Assembly: GCA_964019335.1 (NCBI GenBank)
Contig: OZ025688.1
Location: 1 to 64,000 of the forward strand
Source of the DNA: Diplonema japonicum
Lineage: Eukaryota; Protista; Euglenozoa: Diplonemea
Length of the DNA stretch: 64,000 nucleotides
Reading direction: 5' to 3'
Shown: one piece after another, positions 1 to 57,354 of the stretch
How the letters are laid out: the number at the start of each line of letters is the position of its first letter
Position numbering within the stretch: position 1 is the stretch's first letter
Notes under the pieces: generated by a model
Seen by the model: the letters and a program-made list of their open reading frames with translations, nothing else
Databases searched by the model: none
What the model was told of the DNA's origin: nothing
Program-made: the position numbers and the translations under genes

Positions 1-519
1 GGGTTTGCGGGTTTGCGGGTTTGCGGGTTTGCGGGTTTGCGGGTTTGCGGGTTTGCGGGTTTGCGGGTTTGCGGGTTTGCGGGTTTGCGGGTTTGCGGGT
101 TTGCGGGTTTGCGGGTTTGCGGGTTTGCGGGTTTGCGGGTTTGCGGGTTTGCGGGTTTGCGGGTTTGCGGGTTTGCGGGTTTGCGGGTTTTGCGGGTTTT
201 GCGGGTTTTGCGGGTTTTGCGGGTTTTGCGGGTTTTGCGGGTTTTGCGGGTTTTGCGGGGTTTGCGGGGTTTGCGGGGTTTGCGGGGTTTGCGGGGTTTG
301 CGGGGTTTGCGGGGTTTGCGGGGTTTGCGGGGTTTGCGGGGTTTGCGGGGTTTGCGGGGTTTGCGGGGTTTGCGGGGTTTGCGGGGTTTGCGGGGTTTGC
401 GGGGTTTGCGGGGTTTGCGGGGTTTGCGGGGTTTGCGGGGTTTGCGGGGTTTGCGGGGTTTGCGGGGTTTGCGGGGTTTGCGGGGTTTGCGGGGTTTGCG
501 GGGTTTGCGGGGTTTGCGG
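1..519 (+). repeat. Telomere-like tandem repeat in three blocks: (GGGTTTGC)x23, (GGGTTTTGC)x8, (GGGGTTTGC)x29
   Basis: Read directly: 1-184 8-mer, 185-256 9-mer with T4, 257-517 9-mer with G4, then a partial GG before unique sequence. Array runs off the window start. Confidence 0.97.
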
Positions 520-3500
520 ATACCAATCTGGCCAGCCATAGCCACCTCCAGTGGAACACCCAGCGACCCGGCCTTCGCAAGAAGCATCTCCTCAGTCCTC
601 TCCCTTCCAGGGTCCGTTCCTTCTTCAAGGATGATCTCCACCCGGCCCTAGAACTGGATGATGAACTTGAGCAGTCGGTCCCCCGGCCTCGCCCTCAGTG
701 GCACCATCGCTCTCGGAATTGGGATGCCCATCACCACATCAATCGGGTCAAGCTGAACGAAGTCTCCCCCTACTTCCACCTGCTGTTCCCTTTCCGGTGC
801 CCCGACTCCCATCAGCTGATCTCCCTCCGGCGTCTGGATCCCACCCCTAGGTGTGTCAGGCCCCGACTGGCTGCCTCCGTCGGTGCGTTCCCGCCCTCTT
901 TGGTCCCTTCGGGGGCGTCATCCGCCTGCGGCTTCAGAGTCCTCCCACCGCCCTGTCTCTTCGCAGCTTGTTCCCTACAGAATTCGCTCACGGTCATCTT
1001 CCTCGTAGCAGTTGTCGCACTCTGGTCCCCCTTGTTCGAGTCCCTCTGGGCCTCCGTATCCCCCTTAGGACACTGGTCCAAGGTCTGGTTCACCGCAGCG
1101 TCAGTCGCCCCTTGTCTCTTCCCATCTTCCTGGGCCTTCGGGTCAAGCTCCCCTCCCTGCCCAGCCCTCTCGCTGGATCCTGTTCCGGCCATCTCCGCCT
1201 CCCTGTCCCTTCACTTCCCTCTCGGACGACTCCTCAGCTTCGGTGGTTTTTTCATTGCCGAAGGAGTCCTCTGTGAGGTCAGTGTTGGATTCAGTGTTGG
1301 GTTCGTTGTTCGCTTCCTCGTTGTCCTTTTTTTCCTCTTCGCCGTCCGGTACCGGGGGCCCTGGATCTAACTGTACAGGCCCTTTGACTAACAGCGCCCC
1401 TGCTATCGATCTCATCATGGCCGTTGACACCTCTTGGACCACACGCCTGTGTATCGAGACTCTGTCCCCGTGAGCCCACGCAGCTATGCTCCTGGACAGT
1501 TTCTTCGTGAGGTAGACTGCTGCCTCCCCGAACCCCCCAAAGGTCTCCATCGCGAAAGGTACAAAGGCCACGCGTGTCTTGGCGAGCTCCGCCTCATACT
1601 TCTGGCGCTTGTAGTGTTCCGCCTTCGCCGCTGCGTACCCCGCAGTCTTCGCCGCCTGGTTGACACAAGACTCGTTCCTCGGGTGCACGATGACCACGTC
1701 CATAGCCATTGGGCGGGAACCCCCCACCCCACCTGGGAAGAACACGTCCGCCGGGCGCTGGGACGACCCCGGGATCAGCCCCGTCTTCTCCATCGTTGCG
1801 CTCACCCCGGCCCACTGACAGTGTCTGTGGATGGTCTCCTTCACCCGGTCGTGCCTCGCAATCCTGGCGTTGCCGCATCCCTGGGCATGGTCACCCCATA
1901 CGTCCATCCCCTCAGTCTTGCACCTCGGGTCGTGGCAGCTCTCACCCTGCTTGTAGACCGGAGCCCCCAACCACCACTTGATCAGAGCCCCAAACTCGTT
2001 GTCCGACAGCTGGTTGTAGAAGTCAGGCGTCGCCGTCAACCACGCCCCCGCATAGTGCATTGACTCCGACATCAACCTCGCTCTCGAGCGTGCATCTGCT
2101 TTCGCCAAGAGGCCCTCCAGCGCCTTCTCATCAAGCACCCTAGAGAGCCACCTCTGGCTGCAGATGTGGGGGGCCTTGGCCACCATGTCGGGTGTAATCT
2201 GCATGCCGCCCTTCGTCCTGTTGAACCACTCGAGCCAGCTCCCCCATACACCCCCTTCCAGCCCATGTTCGTATTTGGGATCCAGCTCCTTGCACAGCTT
2301 CATCGTCGACGCCCTCGAAGCCATGTTGGCCGCGCGCAGGTGCTCCTGGCAGCTCCTCATCCCAAGCCCACCGACTTTTACGGACAGTTTCGCCTGCTGC
2401 CATTCTTTCGACCCGCTCTCGAACTGCATGCCGCACACCTTCGACATCGTCTTCCGCACCATCTCGTCGAACCTGTGCATGACCCCTCCCACATGCGAGT
2501 CTGGGACCACTCTCATGTAAAACACCAGTTTGCTGTATGAGCTGCAATACCGGAGGTAGAACTGGAGGATGTCCAGGTTGCAGTCTTCACTTATCTCGTT
2601 CACCAGGGGTTGGATGGCCAGAGAGAACAGCAGTGGTCCCATCGGGTCCCCCTGTTGCACCCCTTCCTGGGACTTAATCACCTTTCCGTTGTAGTATAAT
2701 TGGGAGGGCACCCTGTAGCACCAATCGGCCCACGCATACAGCCCCGACGCTTGCTCATAGGCCTGTGAGCACAGCTGCCTCCGACAAACACTGTTGAAGG
2801 CGTTGGCGTAGTCGATCTTGAGGATCACCTTGTTTTCCTGCTTGTTGCCCCGTTCCCTGTCCACATACTGCCTGATGGTGTGTATAGCCGCCTCCATTCC
2901 AGCAGGGACCGATACCCCCACCTGGCCGCCTTTCTTCAGGTACGAAGAGGCCACTTCCGGAGCGATCTTCTTCACAAGGGATTTCCCCACCAGCCGACGC
3001 AGCACATCCCCAACGGCTATGGGCCGCACGTCCCTGTCGTTCTTCTTGAGGGCCACAAGGTTCGCCCCTGCCATCAGCGGAGCCACCTCCCTAGGGGCCG
3101 TGCCTCTAGCTAATGCGTTGACTGCCCTCGTCACCGACATCAAACAGCCTTGAGACTCAAAAGCTCCGTCCACCGCGTCCTTGATGTGCTGGGCTCTCAG
3201 ACCAGTCGGTCCCGCAGCAGTCCCCCTCGGGAAGTCCCTGATTGCGTCCAGCACTTCTTCTGGCAAGACTTCTACCGCTTCCTTCGTCTTCGCCGGGTTG
3301 TCCCATTGGGGGTGTAGTGGCTCTGGATGTTTGCTCTGCAGCGCTCTCCAGCAATCCTCATTGTCTTCCGCCAGCCCCTGGGCTACAAGCGCCGCGTTTC
3401 CTGCCGAGAACCTCCCTTTGCTGCACAGTTCCGTGGCCCTGGCGACCTTAGAGACCTCGTCGTTCTTAGGTTCCCCCTTCTCACCTGATTCCAGCTTATT

Positions 3501-5830
3501 CCAGAGGGCCATGTAATTTCCCTTCTCCCACTCCTCCAATCTGGCCTGGACACTCAGCTCCGTCTCCTTGTCCCGCTTCTTCCCTCCCCTCTTCTTCCAC
3601 AGGCAGGCTTTGGGGAGCATCGCCACCAGCAGCCAAGCCTCCTCTGTGTTGTCCTTCACCGCTCGGCCCAGAGTGTGCTTAAGGGTAAGCCCCCACAGTC
3701 TTTGAAGGCTCGTCGGGATCGACCCCATGGTCGTGACGTTCATGGCGGCTATGGCTTCCAGGCTGGGTAACTCGGTCCTCGTCGGGGCCGGCGGGGGGGT
3801 CGTGTATTCCCCTTCCCTTCGCACCGCCTTTTTGCACTCGTCGTGGCACCCCTGACCCTTCCACACACAGCCCCTGCACACCAGGCACCTCTCGAGGTCC
3901 AGTCTCCTCAGAACGCTCTCCGGGATCTCATCACTCTCCAGGTGCCCATCCAGGTGACACTTCCATACCCTTGTCGAGTTGAACGGGGTCGTGCTTTTGC
4001 ACTTCGACCTAGCGCAGTTCGCCACCGGACAGTACAGGAATTGCTGGTTCCTTGCCCCCATCTGGTCCAACACCCCTGCCTTCCCATATCCAGGGATCGC
4101 ACGGTCTATTATGTCCCACTCCCCGATGTCCTCACCCGGGGCCTCGGAGGGTTGCTTACCTGCCTTTTGTAGAGCTACCGATTGGGACTCATCAAGGAGC
4201 ATCATCATCGACTCCTCCTCTCCGACTGCATACTCGTAGTGGTTGCCGTTGTACGCCAGCACCACCACCTTCTCGTGGTCGGAGTTGTACTCCCCTATCA
4301 TCAGGACTGGGTTGTTCCCCAGCAACCACGAGTATCGTGTGGCCAAACGCTTGTGCTGCGGCTGCCAGGCACAAGTGGTCTCCCCACGTCGCCGCTGTGC
4401 CCATCCCTTCCAAGTACCGGTCCCAACCCTCACTGCAAAACGGGGCATAGTGCTCCTCCCGGTGTTTCATCCATTCTACAACCTCGCTCCTGATGTGGGT
4501 GTGGTCGCCGTAGGCTTCCCCGAGCGAACCGGCCAGGGCGTGGAACATGCAGTTCCCGTCCTTCTCCGTCGATCTCCTCGTCAGCTTGAAGCTCTTCATG
4601 ATCTCGTCCACTGACTTGCTGGCCCTAGGTTGTTTGTCAGGGTTCCACAGATTCCGCTGCCTGTGTAGTGCACAGTGCGTCTGGTTCGACGAGCATGCCA
4701 CAGCACATGTTCCACAGAGGTTCACCTTCATGTTCCTCGCCTGCTCTTGTTTCACAAAATGATGGTGGACCGCATTGAGGTGTTTAACTAGACAGCTTGC
4801 CACACTGGTGTGGAAAGAGCAGCCTTCCATCCGGCATTGATGTTTGTCTGTTCCTTCTTTTTCCCCCTCCTTCTGCACCTCCGTGTGCTCATCATCCAAA
4901 TCCATGGGGGGAGGGTCACCACCTCCTTGCAACGCGTCCCCTGCCAGCGTCAAGTCCACAAAGGGGTCCAGGTGTTCGGCCTGAAAGAGCTTATCCTCCG
5001 TCTTGGCTCGTTCCTTCGCCGCTTGCTTGGCGTCTTCCTTCTTTTTTCTGCGTCTTGAGCTTCTAGGCAGGCCCAAGTACACCGGCAGGTAGTGACCTCT
5101 CGATCCACGTCTTGTCTTCCTCAGCTTTACCGGTCCAAATCTCTGGGTTGGGTCAGCACCAGCTTTCCCCACCATCACTTCCGACATGGCCCAGAGCGAC
5201 ATCAGCCCCCCTATCCAAACTGAAGTGCTTCCCACCAGAGTGCCCCCTACTGCTAGCCAAGCGAGCTCCCCAGCGGACCATTCATCCCCTCAGGGCCCAC
5301 CTGTACCCTTGACCTGTGGGTGGTCCTCCTGTCGCTCCCCGGCCTCTTCCACAACACTGCCGCATGCAGGAAGGAGGGGGCCATCCCAATGCCTGCCCCC
5401 AGCACCTGCCTCACCCCGAGAGGGAGAACAGGGTGACCCAGGCCCACGCCCCCAGGTGCTCCCATCTCACCCCTTCCTTGCTGTGTCCCATCCGTCTGCG
5501 GTGCCTCCTTGTGCCGGTTGCAGCCCCAGGTGCCGGGATTCTGGGTGCCAGGGGTTGGGCTCCAGGCGTTCCCACCTCAGTCTGCTTCAGCCCCATTGCA
5601 GGGTCATCTGGCTTCTGTTCCAGGGCAGCCTCGTGTTCCTCTCTGCGGGCCCTCCTCCTCCCTTCTTTCCTCGCACGATGGTGCCTTTTCTTCTCCTGTC
5701 TGGCAGCCTCCCTCACCCCCTCCCTCACCTTGGTCCTCTTCCCCCAACGCCTGAAGGGCCGTTTCGCTCCTGTGCCTCCTCCTGTTCTTCTTCCACTTGG
5801 GTGCTGGCTTAGGTTCCCTGCCACCCATGG
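520..5830 (-). mobile_element. CRE-clade (RLE-type) non-LTR retrotransposon, defective copy
   Basis: RT motifs RPIAVGDVLRRLVGK, KIDYANAFNSV, GVQQGDPMGPLLFSL; GGLG; CCHC finger (CHDPRC..DH..GC); RLE motifs RHD, RPADV, DVVIVHP, KRQKY, FVPFAMETFGGFG; N-terminal zinc fingers. The 5' boundary is approximate (decayed frames 5253-5833). Confidence 0.88.
1143..5235 (-). pseudogene. Retrotransposon polyprotein ZnF-OTU-ZnF-RT-RLE, split by a frameshift near 4317-4320 and lacking the RT YLDD motif
   Basis: ORF 4192..5235 carries C2H2 and the OTU N-half (KDGNCMFHAL..WGDHLCL). ORF 1143..4448 carries the OTU His motif (LAYNGNHYE), RT and RLE. FYL is joined directly to RYCS at 2552/2553. Confidence 0.85.
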
Positions 5831-6700: not shown

Positions 6701-6717
6701 TCTCTTTTGCACTTCTT

Positions 6718-6748
<31 letters not shown>

Positions 6749-7812
6749 CAAATGTTTAAACTTTTCTCTTCATTTTTGTATTGATTTCCTCCTCTTCTTC
6801 CTCCTCCTCTAGTTCAGATTTACCTGAACATAGCCCATGCCATGCCATGTTGAGTCATGTTTCTGGTGCTTATCCTCTGCACCCTCTGCACCCCTTTCAC
6901 CTTCTTCACTACTTGGCACAGCTTCGGTGTCGGGAACAAAGAACAGAAGCAGAACAAGTACCACAATCATTTTATCTGTTAATTGTAAAAAATAATACAA
7001 AGAAAATGATAAACAAAGGCTAAATACTGTATAAATACACATTGACTCTGACAGCAATGCAACACAATGTGAAGCAACATGATGTGTTTTCTGTTCACAT
7101 TTCATACACTTGACACAAAAAATGTGTTGAAGTAACACACCAAAGTGTTGTTTTATATTGTACCATACAGTGTATAAAATATCCCAGAAGGGCTGCCCTT
7201 TCATAACTGGAAGTTAGATTTTTTCTTACATCATGTAGAACATCATGTATGCAAAATATGGTGTAAAATATGTCACAACACACCACATGGTGTGGTCGAA
7301 AATTTGCAGTGTTGGGGTGGTTTGTGGGCCAGACCCCTCAGACCACCAGTCTGGCCCACTACAAAGCGTCCGTTAAAGAAAAGCAAGCCAGGATAGACTT
7401 GTGTACCCTTTTTTCGCTCCTCTTCACTTTCACCCACCTGGGCCCCACCCACCCCTGCCCCTACCCGAGGCCAGGGAGGGAGAAAAAGACACACATGTCA
7501 CACTTCCATCCCTCACCCACACCTTCACTTTGATCAGGTCCTTGACCTTTCCCACTGGGGCCCTTATCCTTGTGTCACACCTCTCCAAGAACTCACGTAG
7601 TGTCACCCTGGTAGTGCTGGCTCCCACCACAATGCCCACTACCCCTTCCTTCCCTGGTGTTGGGTGGTGTCTGCACCCCTGGGTCTGCAACTTGACCACC
7701 CTCCATGCCATTTCCAGAGTCCCCTAATGCAGATGCTCAGGGTGATGAATTGGCAGCAAACTGCATGAGCACAGAATCTTGGTTACCCCGGGTTGCTATG
7801 GCTGGGGTTAAG

Positions 7813-11667: not shown

Positions 11668-11703
<36 letters not shown>

Positions 11704-12993: not shown

Positions 12994-14281
12994 ATGTCCC
13001 TTGGGTTGGTGCCAGCTGGTTATCAGCAGACAGCTCCTGTAGTGCCTGGGGTATGCGACACCAACACTGAGTGCAATGCCTTACAGCAGCAACCACAATA
13101 CTTCCAGGCAGCAGGGCAGCAGGTGCTGGTTGACCCAAACCAACCACAGGTATTAACATATTACGTTCTATCTATCTCAGGTTGTTGCTCTTCCTCCTGC
13201 AGGACACATCCAACAGCAGCCTCAGTATATAATCCAGCAACCTAATGTGTTTGGTGGTGCCATTGGTGGCATCAGCATTGATCAAGGGCAAGCGAACCAA
13301 TTTACCCAAGCGGGTGTTGTGGGTGTGGCAAACGGTCTGCAGGGCGGTGTTGTTACTGCCCCACTAGCCGGAAGCAACAAACCTGTCTTCAAAGGCCTTG
13401 TCAAGAGATGGAATGTGCAGAAGGTATGCTTGCATATCGTGTCACATGCATTAGGGATACGGCTTCATCCAACCTGCTGAAGGCGGTGAGGATGTGTTTG
13501 TGCACCACTCAGTGGTTCACTCACCAGGCTTCAGGAGCTTGCTTGTACACAGTGATGTTGAATACGAAAAAGAGCCTGTTCCGGTATACACCTTGTTTGT
13601 ACAAACGATGAACCAATAATAGAACCAACCGAACCGCTTCAGAGCCACAAAGGTGACTGGAGCAGGAGGCGGGTTTGTCAAGGGAGCCAATAATGGTATA
13701 AATACTCTTTTGTTTAGTGGAGATAACATGGAGATATAAGAAGTACATCAGATGTGTTGTTCGCTGTTGACCTCCTCGTAGGTCATCACCGGTAGCACCT
13801 AGCAAACTGTACGAGAATCTTGGTTACTGCCCCCCCCCCCCCCCCCCCCCGGCTGGGGATGAGCTCACATCGCACAACGAGTGCCGAGGTGCTTCTTGTA
13901 ATCAAGTCTTGTGCAGGGCGCCACCACACTGGTCTCCTTTATCTCTTCTTATTTTTTTTTTGAGTCACACAAACAGTTTCTGTACCCCAGCAACAGCAAC
14001 AGCAACAGCAGCAGCAGCAGCAACCGCAACAGCAACCGCAACAGCAGCAATTGCAACCGCAGCAGCAACAGCAGATGCCACAGCAACAAATACTCCTTCA
14101 GCAGCCGCAGCAGTCACAGCTGCAGACTCAGCAGGTCAGACCAGCTGTGGCCATGACAGGTGTGGCACAGCCCGCAGCAGGTGTTCAGCCAATGTACCAA
14201 CTGGTTCCCATGAACCAAATGCAGCAGCCTTTAGCGGTGCCAGGGGTGACTGCTGCTCAGCCAGTTCAGAACGCCAACTAG
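12994..14281 (+). CDS. Cold-shock domain RNA-binding protein with Q-rich termini (5 exons)
   Basis: Spliced frame gives [46 protein letters not shown]. Introns 13150-13180, 13424-13454, 13584-13622 and 13696-13976 join the frames to the TAG at 14281. Confidence 0.9.
13883..13930 (+). repeat. Dispersed repeat family, copy F, inside the only long intron
   Basis: GCCGAGGTGCTTCTTGTAATCAAGTCTTGTGCAGGGCGCCACCA matches the ends of copies D and E. Confidence 0.75.
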
Positions 14282-16292: not shown

Positions 16293-16335
<43 letters not shown>

Positions 16336-19032: not shown

Positions 19033-19781
19033 ATGAATGCATTCGAAGTGGAGCAGCTGCTGTTCGAGACGATGGAGTGCAACATGTACAGGTTGCCGCC
19101 TCTGCAGAACACGGCGGGCCACAAAGCTTCGGAGTGGCAGGACAAGATGATCTGGACAGGAATTTGCAAAGGTATGCTTTCGTTATGTCTCATCACCACA
19201 GTGGTTGCAAAGGGCAACACGGCAACTGTCAAGTTGCTGGAGGCCGATGGGACTGTCTTTGCCCAGTGCCCCATCCAAACGGGCGCCGATGTATGTCTGT
19301 CAACACTCGAGAACAAACAACAGGCTCCTAAAAGCATGACACCTGCCATCGATAGCAGCAGGTACTTTGTCCTCCGAATCGAGGACAAGGGAAAGCACGC
19401 TTACATAGGCATCGGTTTCAAGGATAGGGACGAGGCCTTCGATTTCAAGGTGTCTATTACCGACCACAAGAGACAGGAGACGAGATCCGAGTCCCAACCT
19501 GTGTACACAGGACCCAAGCAGGATTTAGAACTTAAACAAGGTGCAAAGATAGTTGTCAATTTGGGAGGCAAAGTGAAGCCTGCGGAGAAGAAGAGCAGGC
19601 CTAGCGGAGGCCTTGCACCCCCCCCATCTCGTGTGATGCCCCCGCCTAGCAATTTCACGAGACCTCCCCAGCAGGTGAAGGCGCCCGAACAAAGCAACCC
19701 TTTCCAACCCGCACCACGTGCAAACCCCCAGCAGCAACAGCAACAGCAACAGCAACCGACACCAAGTCTGTTTCAGCAACC

Positions 19782-19819
<38 letters not shown>

Positions 19820-20345
19820 CGACACCTAGTCTGTTTCAGCAACCACAGCCACAACAACAGCAACAGTCTGCACCTAGTCTTTTTCAGCAGCCTCAGCAGC
19901 AAAACCAGCCGCAGCAGGTACCACAACAACAACAGGTTAACCTGTTTGGACAACAACCGCAGTCCCAGCAGCAGCCGCAGCAACAAGCGTCTGGTCTGGA
20001 CTTCCTTCTAGCTGATCCAAAACCCCATGAAAATAAACCGTTTGACCCGTTCGAAGTAGTGGCACCAAATGCACCAGTACAACAGCAGTTCCAAGCACCT
20101 ATTTACCAGCAGCAGTCTCAGAACCAACAGCCCCTGCAGCAGCCTCTGCAACAACAGCACCAGCCGCCACCACAAACTCATACGAATGGAGATCTCTTGG
20201 ACTTCGGACCTGAAGACACCAAACAAGCAAAAAGCTCAGTATGTTGTACCTACCTTGCACACGCAAACAGGTTCTTGATGCTTTCGCTCCTACACACCAG
20301 CAGCCACCCACCCAGAAGTTGCAAAATTGGGACCCTTTTCAATAG
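19033..20345 (+). CDS. NECAP: NECAP-like adaptin ear-binding protein (PHear domain, Q-rich tail with DPF motifs)
   Basis: GHKASEW, DSSRYFVLRIED, AYIGIGFKDRDEAFDFKV; introns 19172-19201 and 19291-19323 (both in-frame) and 20239-20270; ends WDPFQ*. Confidence 0.9.
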
Positions 20346-27630: not shown

Positions 27631-28985
27631 TCTCTATCCTGTCGCAAGCACAGAGGCGGATAAGCCGAGTAGGCAAGTTCCAGTGCCTCCAAGAGTACCT
27701 GCTCTCTTCACGAACAAGCATCAAGCACACTTTTAAGGTGTCGAAGATGTTAAAAAAAAAGTTACTTTCAACACCCTGTTTAATATCCAACCTCCACCCC
27801 TTCCCTTTCCCTTTCCCTTTCCCTTCCCCTCTTTCCCTTCCACCCATTGTTACATAAAGAAGCTAATAAAGAAACTCTCCTCTCTACGAGAAGTAAAAAA
27901 GAAAATACAAGAAAAAAAAAGAAGGAATAGAAAAGGTCGATCTACCATACCCTACACTTTGACAAGCACACATATGTTGCTGTGTACCACTGCCAATAAC
28001 GGATTTTGTCTGGCATGTTCTATAATTACTTTTTTTGATGCTCTTCTGGGCCTTCTCGCATCTAAAATGAAGACGAAGAAGGCACAAGAGGAAGATAAGA
28101 GGAAAATAAAGAGAAGGAATAAAAAAAAAAACAACAAATGGTTATGGAACAGTTTGCGGGACACGCATTCTGCATCTTGAAAGCAAAAAGAGACCCCTCC
28201 CAGAAAAGAAGAAGATGAAATGAGAAAGAAAAGGTCCCTGCGCATCGAGGATAGAATCCCGCCTGTGTGTGTTGTTTGAAATAGTTTTCCAAATTAAACA
28301 AAACGAAATTCGTCCTGTACCAAGAACTAAGAAAAAAAAAGAATAAAAAACGTTTTAGCGCATACTTTTTCTTTTCCCCATGTCTCTTTGATGCATGCAC
28401 CTTTTGTGTTTTTTTTTTCTCTTTAGTTACTTACATTCCTCTGTTTTTATACTTATTTGTGTTAAGCATTTCTGACCTTCCCAGAAAAAAAAAAGAGGAA
28501 AAAAAAAAAAAAAAAAAAAAAAGGAAAGCATTGTATAGAACCCTGATTGTTCTCTTCCTTTTTTTTATTGAAACCCGTCCACCCCCCTTTTTTTTATATG
28601 AGAATTTCTCTTCCGTCCCAGAACTGTTTTTTAAACGGCGTGACGCAGAAAGAGAATAGAAACCGCGAATGAAAGAAAAAAGAAAAAAGATACCTGTATT
28701 AAGCCTTCCGCTCCACGAGCCAAGGCGCCTTGACCTACCCCCGGCAAAGGGGAGCTTTTTTCTTTGTGAAGAGTACCTTTTTTTTCTGGATCCAAAAATA
28801 TGCTTCCACTACTACCTCCGCAAACCTCCCTCCCTATTAACCTCCTCTCTTGTTCCCTTGTCCCTATTGTCCCTTTCCTTGACGTATTTTCAGCGCTGCC
28901 TTCCGCTTTCAGTTTCCCCCTTTCTTTTATTGTCTTGCACTGAACCTTCACTCTGTCTTGCAACACTCGCACAGGCTGGGTTGTG

Positions 28986-34190: not shown

Positions 34191-37104
34191 ATGCCCGAGC
34201 AAGAAGGGCTGGCCGCGCCGGGCGGGAATGCTGGCACGGGCGTTCTGCCCGATGAAAAGAAGCTCCAGGAGAAGAGGAGAGACAAGGTGAAGATGTTTCT
34301 AAACAAGGTAGGCGACAAGAAGCCAGCACCACCTGCAAGCCCTAGCCCACCACAGCAACAACAACTGCAGCAGCAGCAACAGCCTTGTCCACAGCAACAG
34401 CTCCAACAACAGCAACAACAAGAGACAGCAGGGAAAAAAGCTCCCGTGTCCCAGGCACAAGCAGCGGCGCAAAATCAAGGAAGCCAAGTGAACCAACAGA
34501 TGAGCAACATGTGGGGCTCATATTGGAACATGAACAACTACGCTGCTTATGCTGCTTATAACCCCTGGCAAATGGGGTGGGGATGGGGTTCTTGGATGCA
34601 GCATCAGCACCAACATCAGCATCAACACCAACACCAGCATCAACATCAACATCAACAGCAGCACCAACACCAACATCAACATCAACACCAGCACCAGCAA
34701 AAGGTGATAAATCCAAGGTCAAGTATTGTTAAATATAAATGCAGCAGGTGCACAAACGTGTTCCAGGGAGAACCTGGTGCGCAGGTGACATGCGGTGGTT
34801 GTGGCGGGACAGTCAGGTTGCCCCTGCAGCCTGCGACGCGCTGCAGTGTCGCGTGCGTGACGGCCTGCCTTGCGACCATCTCTTATAGCGCAGTCTATGC
34901 TGTCTTCATCAACATTAAATCTGGGCAGCGTGTTGCCTCGAAGGCGCTTCACCCCATGCCCAAGAACAGTACCACTGGCGACCCGCCAGTCAGCTTGACG
35001 GCCGCGCCGTTCAATTTCATCACCGAAGCCATGCCCCAGCGACACCCGTCGTACCGCAACCCTGTGACCGCCAGGACATGGGACACATCCAACCTCAGTA
35101 CCACCATTTACACGAAGCCCCGTTCCTGTGCTTATGAGGACGGATTGCCTTTTGAGATTCGTGAGCAGCGGGAGATCTGGAAACACATGAAACGCGTGCG
35201 GTCTGTGCTGAGTGTGTGGGGTATCCCTGTCGATCTGGCTTGCAACGTGACTCCCGACGTCGCGGATAAGGTATGCAAATGGGATCAATATGTAAATCCA
35301 CGCAGCCCAAGCCGTTTGATGAGGGACACCTCGAGGCAGCGGAGTCAGTGCTGAAGCTGTTGAATGGAATGTCCGAAGTATGCTGCTAAAGAGTGACAAC
35401 ACCACTAGGAGGGCTCGCCACGGGTTGCAGGTGACGTCACACCCCCTCTTGTGCAGCAGCAGGCGCTCCACGAGCAGCAGAACCTATTGCGAGTGAAGCT
35501 AGAGCAACTCACGGCGCATAAGAAATCGCAGAATGCGTTGGTGCCGACACCACAGGCCTCACCGTCACCTACCCCAACACCCCCTCCTGCGGGCAAGAAG
35601 CTTAAGAAGCGGAAATCTGTCAAGAAAGAGGTGAAGAAAGAACCGGGGATAAAGAAAGAAGTAGAAGTGAAAGAAGAACCATTTGAAGTAAAGTCCAAAG
35701 GGAGAGGGACGAAACATTCGGACAGTCCTGAGGGGTCCGCTGCAAGTGACAAAACAGTCACTACCACTGGGTTGGCTTCGAAGGTGCAACTAGAACCCGG
35801 GTGTTATGTAAAAAGCTTGGAGGGTGCTGACCTGTGGATAGGGAAAATTACAGAGGTGTTCCCTTCTTCCAGCACGCATGACGCTGTGGCCTGCGATGCA
35901 GCTGGGAAAACCTTCAATATCGACAGCAGCAAAGTTGAGATGCTGTGCCCCCCAACGGCCCCCCCCTTAGGCTCTTTGGTGATTACCAACACACGTATTA
36001 CTTTAACTACCGAGGAGGTTCTCCCTGAAGGCACCGTTTTGTGTACACATTCAAGTCATCTGCTTCACTTCACTGCCGTTGAGGTGGTCTGTCACGAGTG
36101 GGGTAAGATCACTCCCACGGAGGGACGCCCGGTGATCAAAGTACACCCCTGGCAGATAAGTCTGTACACGGGTGTCAAGTATCGCAAGGGGATGAAGGTA
36201 CGTGTTTGCGGTGCTGTGAGACTTAAGACAGGCGTGCTGGAAGAAGGCAGCTCAGGCACCGTGGTGGCAGTCAATGAATCTGACCCTTCTGTGCATATTT
36301 TAAAGGCAAAATTTAGTACCGGAGTGATGGGTGTGCGCTTGGATCAAGTGGAAGTTACGGAGAGGAGCAAAGGGGTTGTGAACGATCCCCCGCCGCCCAG
36401 GCAGAAGAGCCCAGCTCCCACAGAGCTTGCAAACGGGTGTTGCAAAAAAGGCCATAAAATGGCATGGGTACATTCAGGAGGACAGTGGGAGTTGGGCAAC
36501 TCGGGGTATATGTGGCATAGCTGTGACTTCTGTACGAAAAGTAGCTTTCAAGGCTGGTTGCTGCGGTGCAGGGTGTGCAACGTTGATCTGTGCTCTTTAG
36601 ACTGCGAAGGACGTGCAAGTGGCGAGAAGCCCCCACGCCCTTGGACACTACCTGCTGTGGACATCGATGCGGGTGTCGAGCTACCTCTGCTGCAGAACTA
36701 TTCTGAAAACGAACGGGTTGAGATCATTGCTTACCAACGCAAGCGTCACATGCAAGGTGTCTGCAGGAGAGAGACGCATCTGCAGTGTGTGTGGAAAGCC
36801 CTCGAAGAAGGTGAAGAAATTCCAGAGTTAGAACTCACGTTGCAAGATCTCACTGAAAGGGAGCTGAGCGAGTTAGACTTCCGGACACTGCAGATGTTGT
36901 GCAAATCGAGTGGGATGTCAGGGAGCGGAAGCGCTAAGCAGCTGCGAGGCAGGCTCAGAACGGTATGGTCTGTGCTATCATCACGCAATGCAGGAGATGC
37001 TGAACGACAGGAAGCGTGCTAGATCGCCGGGACGGTCATCGAGGTCAAAGTATGACGAGGGGGGGATGTACAACCGACTTTACAGAAGAAAGAAGACAAG
37101 CTAG
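34191..37104 (+). CDS. Large probable nuclear protein: Q/HQ tracts, Zn ribbon, SH3/Tudor-like barrels, Cys finger, C-terminal SAP domain
   Basis: Introns 35271-35305, 35378-35408 and 36963-36993 join ORFs 34191, 35451 and 36910; CxxC..CxxC motifs; LSELDFRTLQMLCKSSGMSGSGSAKQLRGRL is SAP-like. Confidence 0.75.
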
Positions 37105-38095: not shown

Positions 38096-38879
38096 GCGAC
38101 AAAATAGTGTTCTGCTGTTTGCAAGGCTTGCAAACAGGAGACATTCCCCCCTCCCCCCCCTCCTGTTTTCTGCATGAGAGTTGCGGTGATCTTTCTTGTT
38201 CAAAAAATATTATTATCTGCCCTTTCCCCCCCCCTTTTTTTTCCTTTTTTTCTCTTTGCAAGAATGCGTCTTTGACTTGTTGTGAGGTTGGGTTATTAAC
38301 TTTCCTACCGTGACATGTACGTTCTATTTCTTCTCACACAAGACAATCAAAGAAACACAAGTACCAAAGAACGTCTAGATGAGGCCATTGATGCGACAGG
38401 TTTACCCGTGCCAATATGCGAACAGGACAAAGTCAGTGACTAGGCAGCCATGAAACTATAATTTTTTTTTGTATTTTCACTTGCTCTTCTTTTCTTCATT
38501 TCCTTCGACCTGTTGTGAGAAAATCCTTGGGTGCAACCAGGGATAACGCCTACGGAAAGGGTATCGTGTCCCATGTGAAAAAAAAAAACCCCCTTCCCCT
38601 CCCCTCTTTTTTTGTCCGTTGATACCCTCATGTTTTGTCCCTTCGTTCCCGTGCTTGCCTTCAAAGAAATAGTAAGTCATGCATATGGAAAGAAAATAAA
38701 AAAGGAGTTTTTTTTTTTTTTTTTTTTTTCTTTTTCTTTTTTTTTTTTTTGAAAAAAGATGAAAAAGGAGAAGAAAAATAAAACAAAGGAGAGTCTTTGT
38801 TCCCGCCTCGCCCATTCCTGATGGTCTCTTTTCTTTTTGAGCTTCTTGTGAACATTCAGACACTTCATTTCCAGGAGAG

Positions 38880-57312: not shown

Positions 57313-57354
<42 letters not shown>

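Follow-up and report, generated by a model that had tools for sequence, protein, structure and literature searches.

A chromosome-end repeat with inverted strand polarity in the marine protist Diplonema japonicum

Introduction

Telomeres made by telomerase are usually comprised of a short tandem unit with a G-cluster and a T-run, as in the 8-nt units of Oxytricha and Euplotes (TTTTGGGG) and of Chlamydomonas (TTTTAGGG) and in the TTAGGG telomeres of kinetoplastids. In the telomeres described so far the G-rich strand generally runs 5' to 3' towards the end of the chromosome, although the TeloBase paper contains no statement on strand orientation that could be cited for this. A second type of chromosome end combines short repeats with retroelements: in the silkworm, telomere-repeat-specific LINEs (TRAS1/SART1) insert into (TTAGG)n, while the short repeats still form the extreme end. 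In Drosophila, the ends lack a short terminal repeat and are built from the retrotransposons HeT-A, TART and TAHRE, attached by their poly(A) with 5' ends outward.

Here we describe the first 519 bases of chromosome 41 of Diplonema japonicum YPF1604. The stretch of DNA analysed (the window) comprises 64,000 nt and corresponds to bases 1-64,000 of contig C41 (568,757 bp; 0.57 Mb in the chromosome table of the genome note) of a 62.5-Mb assembly, which was built from 102x PacBio HiFi reads with hifiasm and scaffolded with Hi-C (PMC13598402). The genome note does not mention telomeres. A preliminary description of the sequence had reported a G/T-rich array of 60 units at the start of the window, with the G-rich strand on + and a unit other than TTAGGG. 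It had offered three readings, namely a non-canonical chromosome end whose 3' strand is C/A-rich, an interstitial satellite targeted by the adjacent retroelement, or a basecalling or assembly artefact. Our analysis confirms the observation and supports the first of these readings.

Structure of the array and its flank

The array consists of exactly 60 head-to-tail units in three internally perfect blocks at window positions 1-517, followed by two more in-phase bases (GG). Tandem Repeats Finder (TRF) reports a period of 9, 60.1 copies, 99% matches and a score of 828. The window contains no second array, only single chance units at 19720 and 34013. The features of the array and its flank are as follows.

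1..184 (+): distal block of the array, 23 perfect copies of the canonical 8-nt unit GGGTTTGC; the contig begins exactly at G1 of the unit.
185..256 (+): block of 8 perfect copies of the 9-nt variant GGGTTTTGC, which has one extra T.
257..519 (+): proximal block of 29 perfect copies of the 9-nt variant GGGGTTTGC (257-517), plus GG (518-519); base 519 (G) fits both the repeat and the element, giving 1 nt of microhomology at the junction.
519..5235 (-): dead copy of a LINE family that targets the telomere repeat, with its 3' end facing the terminus, an RT ORF (1143-4448) and an OTU-protease ORF (4192-5235).
7503..7725 (-): 223-nt segment, 94-95% identical to the 3'-UTR part of intact copies of the same family at other ends (sequences L040, L043, L045, L051, L053, L055 and L072), marking a further element fragment in the subtelomere.

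The canonical status of GGGTTTGC derives from the survey of other ends described below, where about 90% of units are of this type. The array of the window is atypical in that 62% of its units are 9-mers. Interestingly, blocks of the rare variant GGGTTTTGC recur at three different chromosome ends, here (x8), at C2 (x16) and at C73 (x12), and the left telomere of C2 (C2:1-2886) is 86% GGGGTTTGC, with runs of up to 107 units. Variant blocks seem to be shared between ends. A gradient from pure distal to variant-rich proximal repeats is not supported, as the canonical fraction is 0.92 in distal and 0.89 in proximal halves. Elsewhere in the window we note many pure A or T homopolymer runs of 33-43 nt (6716-6748, 11668-11700, 16294-16333, 28485-28522, 38708-38750 and 57315-57351), together with CAGCAA-type coding microsatellites (13988-14088, 19732-19909 and 34599-34699).

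Distribution and polarity of the repeat in the genome

The unit is the terminal repeat of the genome. The word (GGGTTTGC)3 occurs 5,902 times in the assembly (3,580 forward, 2,322 reverse), as compared to 0 occurrences of the reversed-letter control, and (TTAGGG)4 does not occur. Of the contig termini examined, 27 of 45 starts and 2 of 2 ends carry the array, in each case oriented as 5'-GGGTTTGC from the terminus inward. The remaining 18 starts have no array and are presumably unfinished ends. Within the terminal stretches there are 54 G-oriented array segments and no C-oriented segment, and array lengths range from 72 to 2,886 bp with a median of 500 bp. To sample further ends, we searched the genome for (GGGTTTGC)3 followed by a non-G base, a pattern that hits an array about once, at its inner edge. 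Of the 36 sites obtained, 15 of the 18 on the + strand lie within 3 kb of a contig start and 17 of the 18 on the - strand lie at or near a contig end, as judged from known lengths or from the bounds given by the size-sorted neighbours. Four junctions of the poly(A) type obey the same rule.

Four of the 36 sites are not located at the expected end: C7:204,559 (+), C13:742,748 (+), C20:401,240 (-) and C38:579,959 (+, within about 5 kb of a right end). These sites may be scaffold joins, mis-oriented terminal contigs or true internal arrays. We note that the assembly has 242 contigs in 121 scaffolds and that scaffolding does bury telomere-bearing contig ends: at C30:334,806-335,052, in the middle of scaffold 30 (0.62 Mb), a C-strand array, a run of N and a G-strand array lie head to head, such that chromosome 30 may be two chromosomes.

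The outermost base of the arrays is non-random. Of the 28 terminal arrays of 50 nt or more, 15 begin exactly at G1 of GGGTTTGC, as compared to 3.5 expected by chance (binomial p = 2.1e-7), and 5 more begin within the G-run. The 24-nt array at the right end of C2 likewise starts at G1. From the way SMRTbell libraries are made, we infer that end repair removes 3' overhangs and fills in 5' overhangs, and that the outermost base of a contig therefore reports the 5'-terminal nucleotide of the 5'-ended strand. A preferred 5' nucleotide is what processed natural telomere ends show, whereas random breaks inside a satellite would not give one. This evidence is indirect: the sequencing runs were examined as contigs and provide no read-level proof that molecules end at base 1.

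The repeat is also found in independent data. Twelve public runs from five studies hold about half or more of the sampled words of window 1-3000. Four of these (X1, X3, X7 and X8, from three studies) were compared with window 421-3400, and their contigs all cover the array at 421-520. The sequencing platforms are not on record, but X7 is, by its size, year and study, probably one of the Illumina Hi-C runs listed in the genome note. In X3 and X8, the contig depth on 421-520 is 58 to 500 times that on the adjoining element (2,769 against 48, and 3,213 against 6.4). If X8 is the poly(A) RNA-seq run of the genome project, repeat-containing RNA may be abundant. A metagenome scan for (GGGTTTGC)3 returned 67 contigs with only short (24-103 nt) internal arrays in unrelated contigs and was uninformative with respect to polarity or other diplonemids. 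One sample (Ga0307514) contributes eight contigs (L081, L094, L097, L103, L107, L123, L126 and L129) with short (GGGTTTGC)n tracts (24-118 nt), some with several tracts per contig.

None of the 16 rotations of the unit on either strand, nor the 9-nt variant, appears as a word in the papers searched, apart from unrelated primers, and none of these papers deals with diplonemid telomeres or telomerase.

Retroelement copies capped by the array

The preliminary description of mobile-element debris next to the array is correct. Pfam matches identify the RT and OTU-protease ORFs, and alignment to other copies shows that homology runs to about 5.9 kb. The copy lacks about 1.8 kb of the family's 3' end and has internal deletions of 164 nt (at 1194-1197) and 329 nt (at 2554/2555), the second of which removes the YLDD catalytic motif, yet a 1,101-aa ORF stays open across both sites. 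Intact 3' ends of the family (L040:612-2412, L051:425-2345, L052 and L059) carry tandem copies of a 26-nt unit (sense strand CTCAAGTCCCCCTTTTTATTTATTTT) and poly(A) tails of 7 to about 66 A joined directly to CCCGCAAA units. In L051 a further 60-nt fragment lies between the poly(A) and the array. Arrays also flank 5'-truncated copies on the inner side (a loose end at 2327 in X7 and a joint 687/492 in X1). These features fit target-primed insertion from a nick in the G-strand, whose T-run can pair with poly(A), which explains the fixed outward orientation of the element.

The inner junctions of the terminal arrays are heterogeneous. The array directly caps copies of this family, always in the same orientation, but at different truncation points: window position 519 (this window), 45 nt further out (C27), 832 (C29), 1632 (C57), 3394 (C13) and 4189 (C75) by alignment, and about 1030 at C1 by reading the C1 flank against window 1031-1090. 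In all four runs the main contigs crossing position 519 continue into element sequence rather than into the repeat, confirming that the window holds a truncated, capped copy. Ten junctions could be read against an untruncated copy and show an overlap between element and repeat of 0-6 nt, mostly 1-3. As the RT ORF lies on the - strand, these are truncations of the 3' side of the element, a pattern that LINE insertion does not produce but that erosion of the chromosome end followed by healing would. Since DNA can only be extended at a 3' end, and the 3'-ended strand here is the - strand, the units added are inferred, from geometry alone, to be GCAAACCC.

A TERT-like gene

The Pfam profile Telomerase_RBD finds a single place in the genome, on the same chromosome at about 534 kb (C41:532474-535800, outside the window). 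It scores 28.4 bits against a cut-off of 25, lies inside a 1,086-aa open frame and is followed by an RVT_1 match. A word-index protein search with this very divergent candidate gave no hits, and phmmer against the PDB gave nothing. An exhaustive HMMER scan of 1.84 billion representative proteins gave three strong relatives (E from 1e-92 to 1e-145; 37-42% identity) and a weak hit to P0010, a protein with a 99.7-bit RBD. Two of the three strong relatives (P0002 and P0003) pass the RBD cut-off themselves; one (P0001, 1,800 aa) is fused to a cyclin domain, which may be a gene-model artefact. A profile of the four sequences matches eight PDB chains, all of them telomerase reverse transcriptases, with matches covering both the RT and the RBD. 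The genome therefore very probably has a TERT, although support is moderate and the scores are borderline (24-28 bits on the RBD and PDB E-values of about 5e-4). No telomerase RNA is known.

Discussion

We consider it likely that window 1-519 is the left telomere of chromosome 41, and that the terminal repeat of the species is (GGGTTTGC)n with homopolymer-length variants, oriented such that the G/T-rich strand has its 5' end, and the C/A-rich strand (GCAAACCC)n its 3' end, at the terminus. The repeat is real, ends at least the contigs, has one polarity at both kinds of end and directly caps retroelement copies truncated at different points. The mechanism is inferred. Ends may erode into the subtelomere and be healed by a polymerase that extends the 3' end with GCAAACCC units, starting from 0-6 nt of overlap. 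This polymerase is most likely the single TERT-like protein of the genome, using an unidentified RNA whose template reads as a permutation of 5'-GGGUUUGC-3'; the G-rich strand would then be filled in and its 5' end trimmed preferentially to 5'-GGGTTTGC. That telomerase is the enzyme, acting on a G-rich template, is about as likely as not. The perfect 9-nt blocks are hard to explain by a single short template with random stutter and probably arise by copying of existing blocks (recombination or slippage) or by long processive runs. The G-strand TTTGCGGG looks like a derivative of plant-type TTTAGGG, which makes a flip of polarity evolutionarily awkward.

The best surviving alternative, which we regard as unlikely, is that polarity and terminal position are real but that the array is maintained by recombination-type copying (break-induced replication, unequal exchange or rolling-circle copying between ends), with TERT inactive at telomeres or serving another role. 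The long homogeneous blocks, the recurrence of GGGTTTTGC blocks at C41, C2 and C73 and the lack of a known template RNA speak for this possibility. The suggestion in the preliminary description that the end was possibly made by something other than ordinary telomerase remains open, as a TERT-like gene is present but no template RNA is known. However, capping of unrelated truncation points with only 0-6 nt of overlap is typical of de novo addition, whereas homology-driven copying needs an existing repeat tract. In addition, a TERT-like gene with an intact long open frame is retained and conserved in three relatives, and the canonical 8-mer predominates at most ends.

It is very unlikely that the polarity is an illusion of assembly or sequencing, with true ends that continue beyond the contigs as a canonical repeat rich in modified bases, a covalently closed hairpin or a palindrome dropped by HiFi or hifiasm. 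Euglenozoans carry base J, 18 of 45 contig starts lack an array, scaffolding buries some telomere-bearing ends, and read-level evidence is lacking. An internal satellite broken by the assembler would, however, show both orientations at contig ends, in contrast to the observed split of 29 to 0 (54 to 0 by segment). The non-random first base, the absence of (TTAGGG)4 from a 102x HiFi assembly, the absence of an inverted C-strand copy next to any terminal array and the presence of the unit in runs of three studies are also against this reading. The interstitial satellite proposed in the preliminary description is wrong as stated, although the neighbouring LINE family does insert into the array. 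A by-product of the retroelement's own reverse transcriptase is equally improbable: the family sits at most ends in one orientation, intact copies join the array through poly(A) and arrays flank 5'-truncated copies, but many terminal arrays abut other sequences or internal points far from the element's 3' end, arrays of up to 2.9 kb exist without an element inside them, the copy in the window lacks the RT catalytic motif, and the sense strand runs towards the terminus, so that reverse transcription of element RNA cannot extend the end.

The asymmetry bears on models of telomerase templating, overhang binding, t-loops, G-quadruplexes and C-strand fill-in, which assume a G-rich 3' end. A free-living eukaryote with about 118 small chromosomes, all capped by a repeat of the opposite polarity, would show that this asymmetry is not obligatory and would offer a natural system for asking which parts of end protection depend on it. 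As a hypothesis with roughly even chances, diplonemids, or at least D. japonicum, have telomeres whose 3' strand is C/A-rich and T-free and is synthesised by a divergent TERT on a G-rich RNA template, with end protection that works without any G-rich overhang, G-quadruplex or POT1-type G-strand binding. This would be a functional mirror image of the eukaryotic telomere, arisen within a phylum whose other studied members use TTAGGG. In practice, telomere-finding software that assumes G-strand polarity or a TTAGGG-like motif will misorient or miss these ends.

Comparison with known systems

Basecalling errors in telomeric repeats of nanopore data also produce unexpected periodic sequence at contig ends, but the assembly considered here is PacBio HiFi, and the unit occurs in several runs and has exact junctions with unique DNA. 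As in the retrotransposon telomeres of Drosophila, retroelements are concentrated at chromosome ends in a uniform orientation. Here, however, a short repeat forms the terminus and the elements have their 3' ends outward, opposite to end addition of the HeT-A type. Telomere-repeat-specific LINEs of the silkworm and the site-specific restriction-like-endonuclease LINEs of the R2/CRE/SLACS group offer a parallel for the neighbour but not for the array: subtelomeres are built from LINE copies inserted into the terminal repeat in a fixed orientation and joined to it through poly(A), yet the outward-pointing elements cannot explain the array.

With the telomerase-made telomeres of Oxytricha, Euplotes, Chlamydomonas and kinetoplastids, the array shares a short tandem unit with a G-cluster and a T-run, one polarity relative to the terminus at both kinds of end, homopolymer-length variants, inferred de novo capping of truncated sequences with short overlaps, a defined terminal nucleotide on the 5'-ended strand and a TERT-like gene in the genome. 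It differs in that the G/T-rich strand is the 5'-ended strand, so that the 3' end, which any polymerase must extend, is C/A-rich (GCAAACCC) and contains no T. With this geometry no G-rich 3' overhang would be possible.
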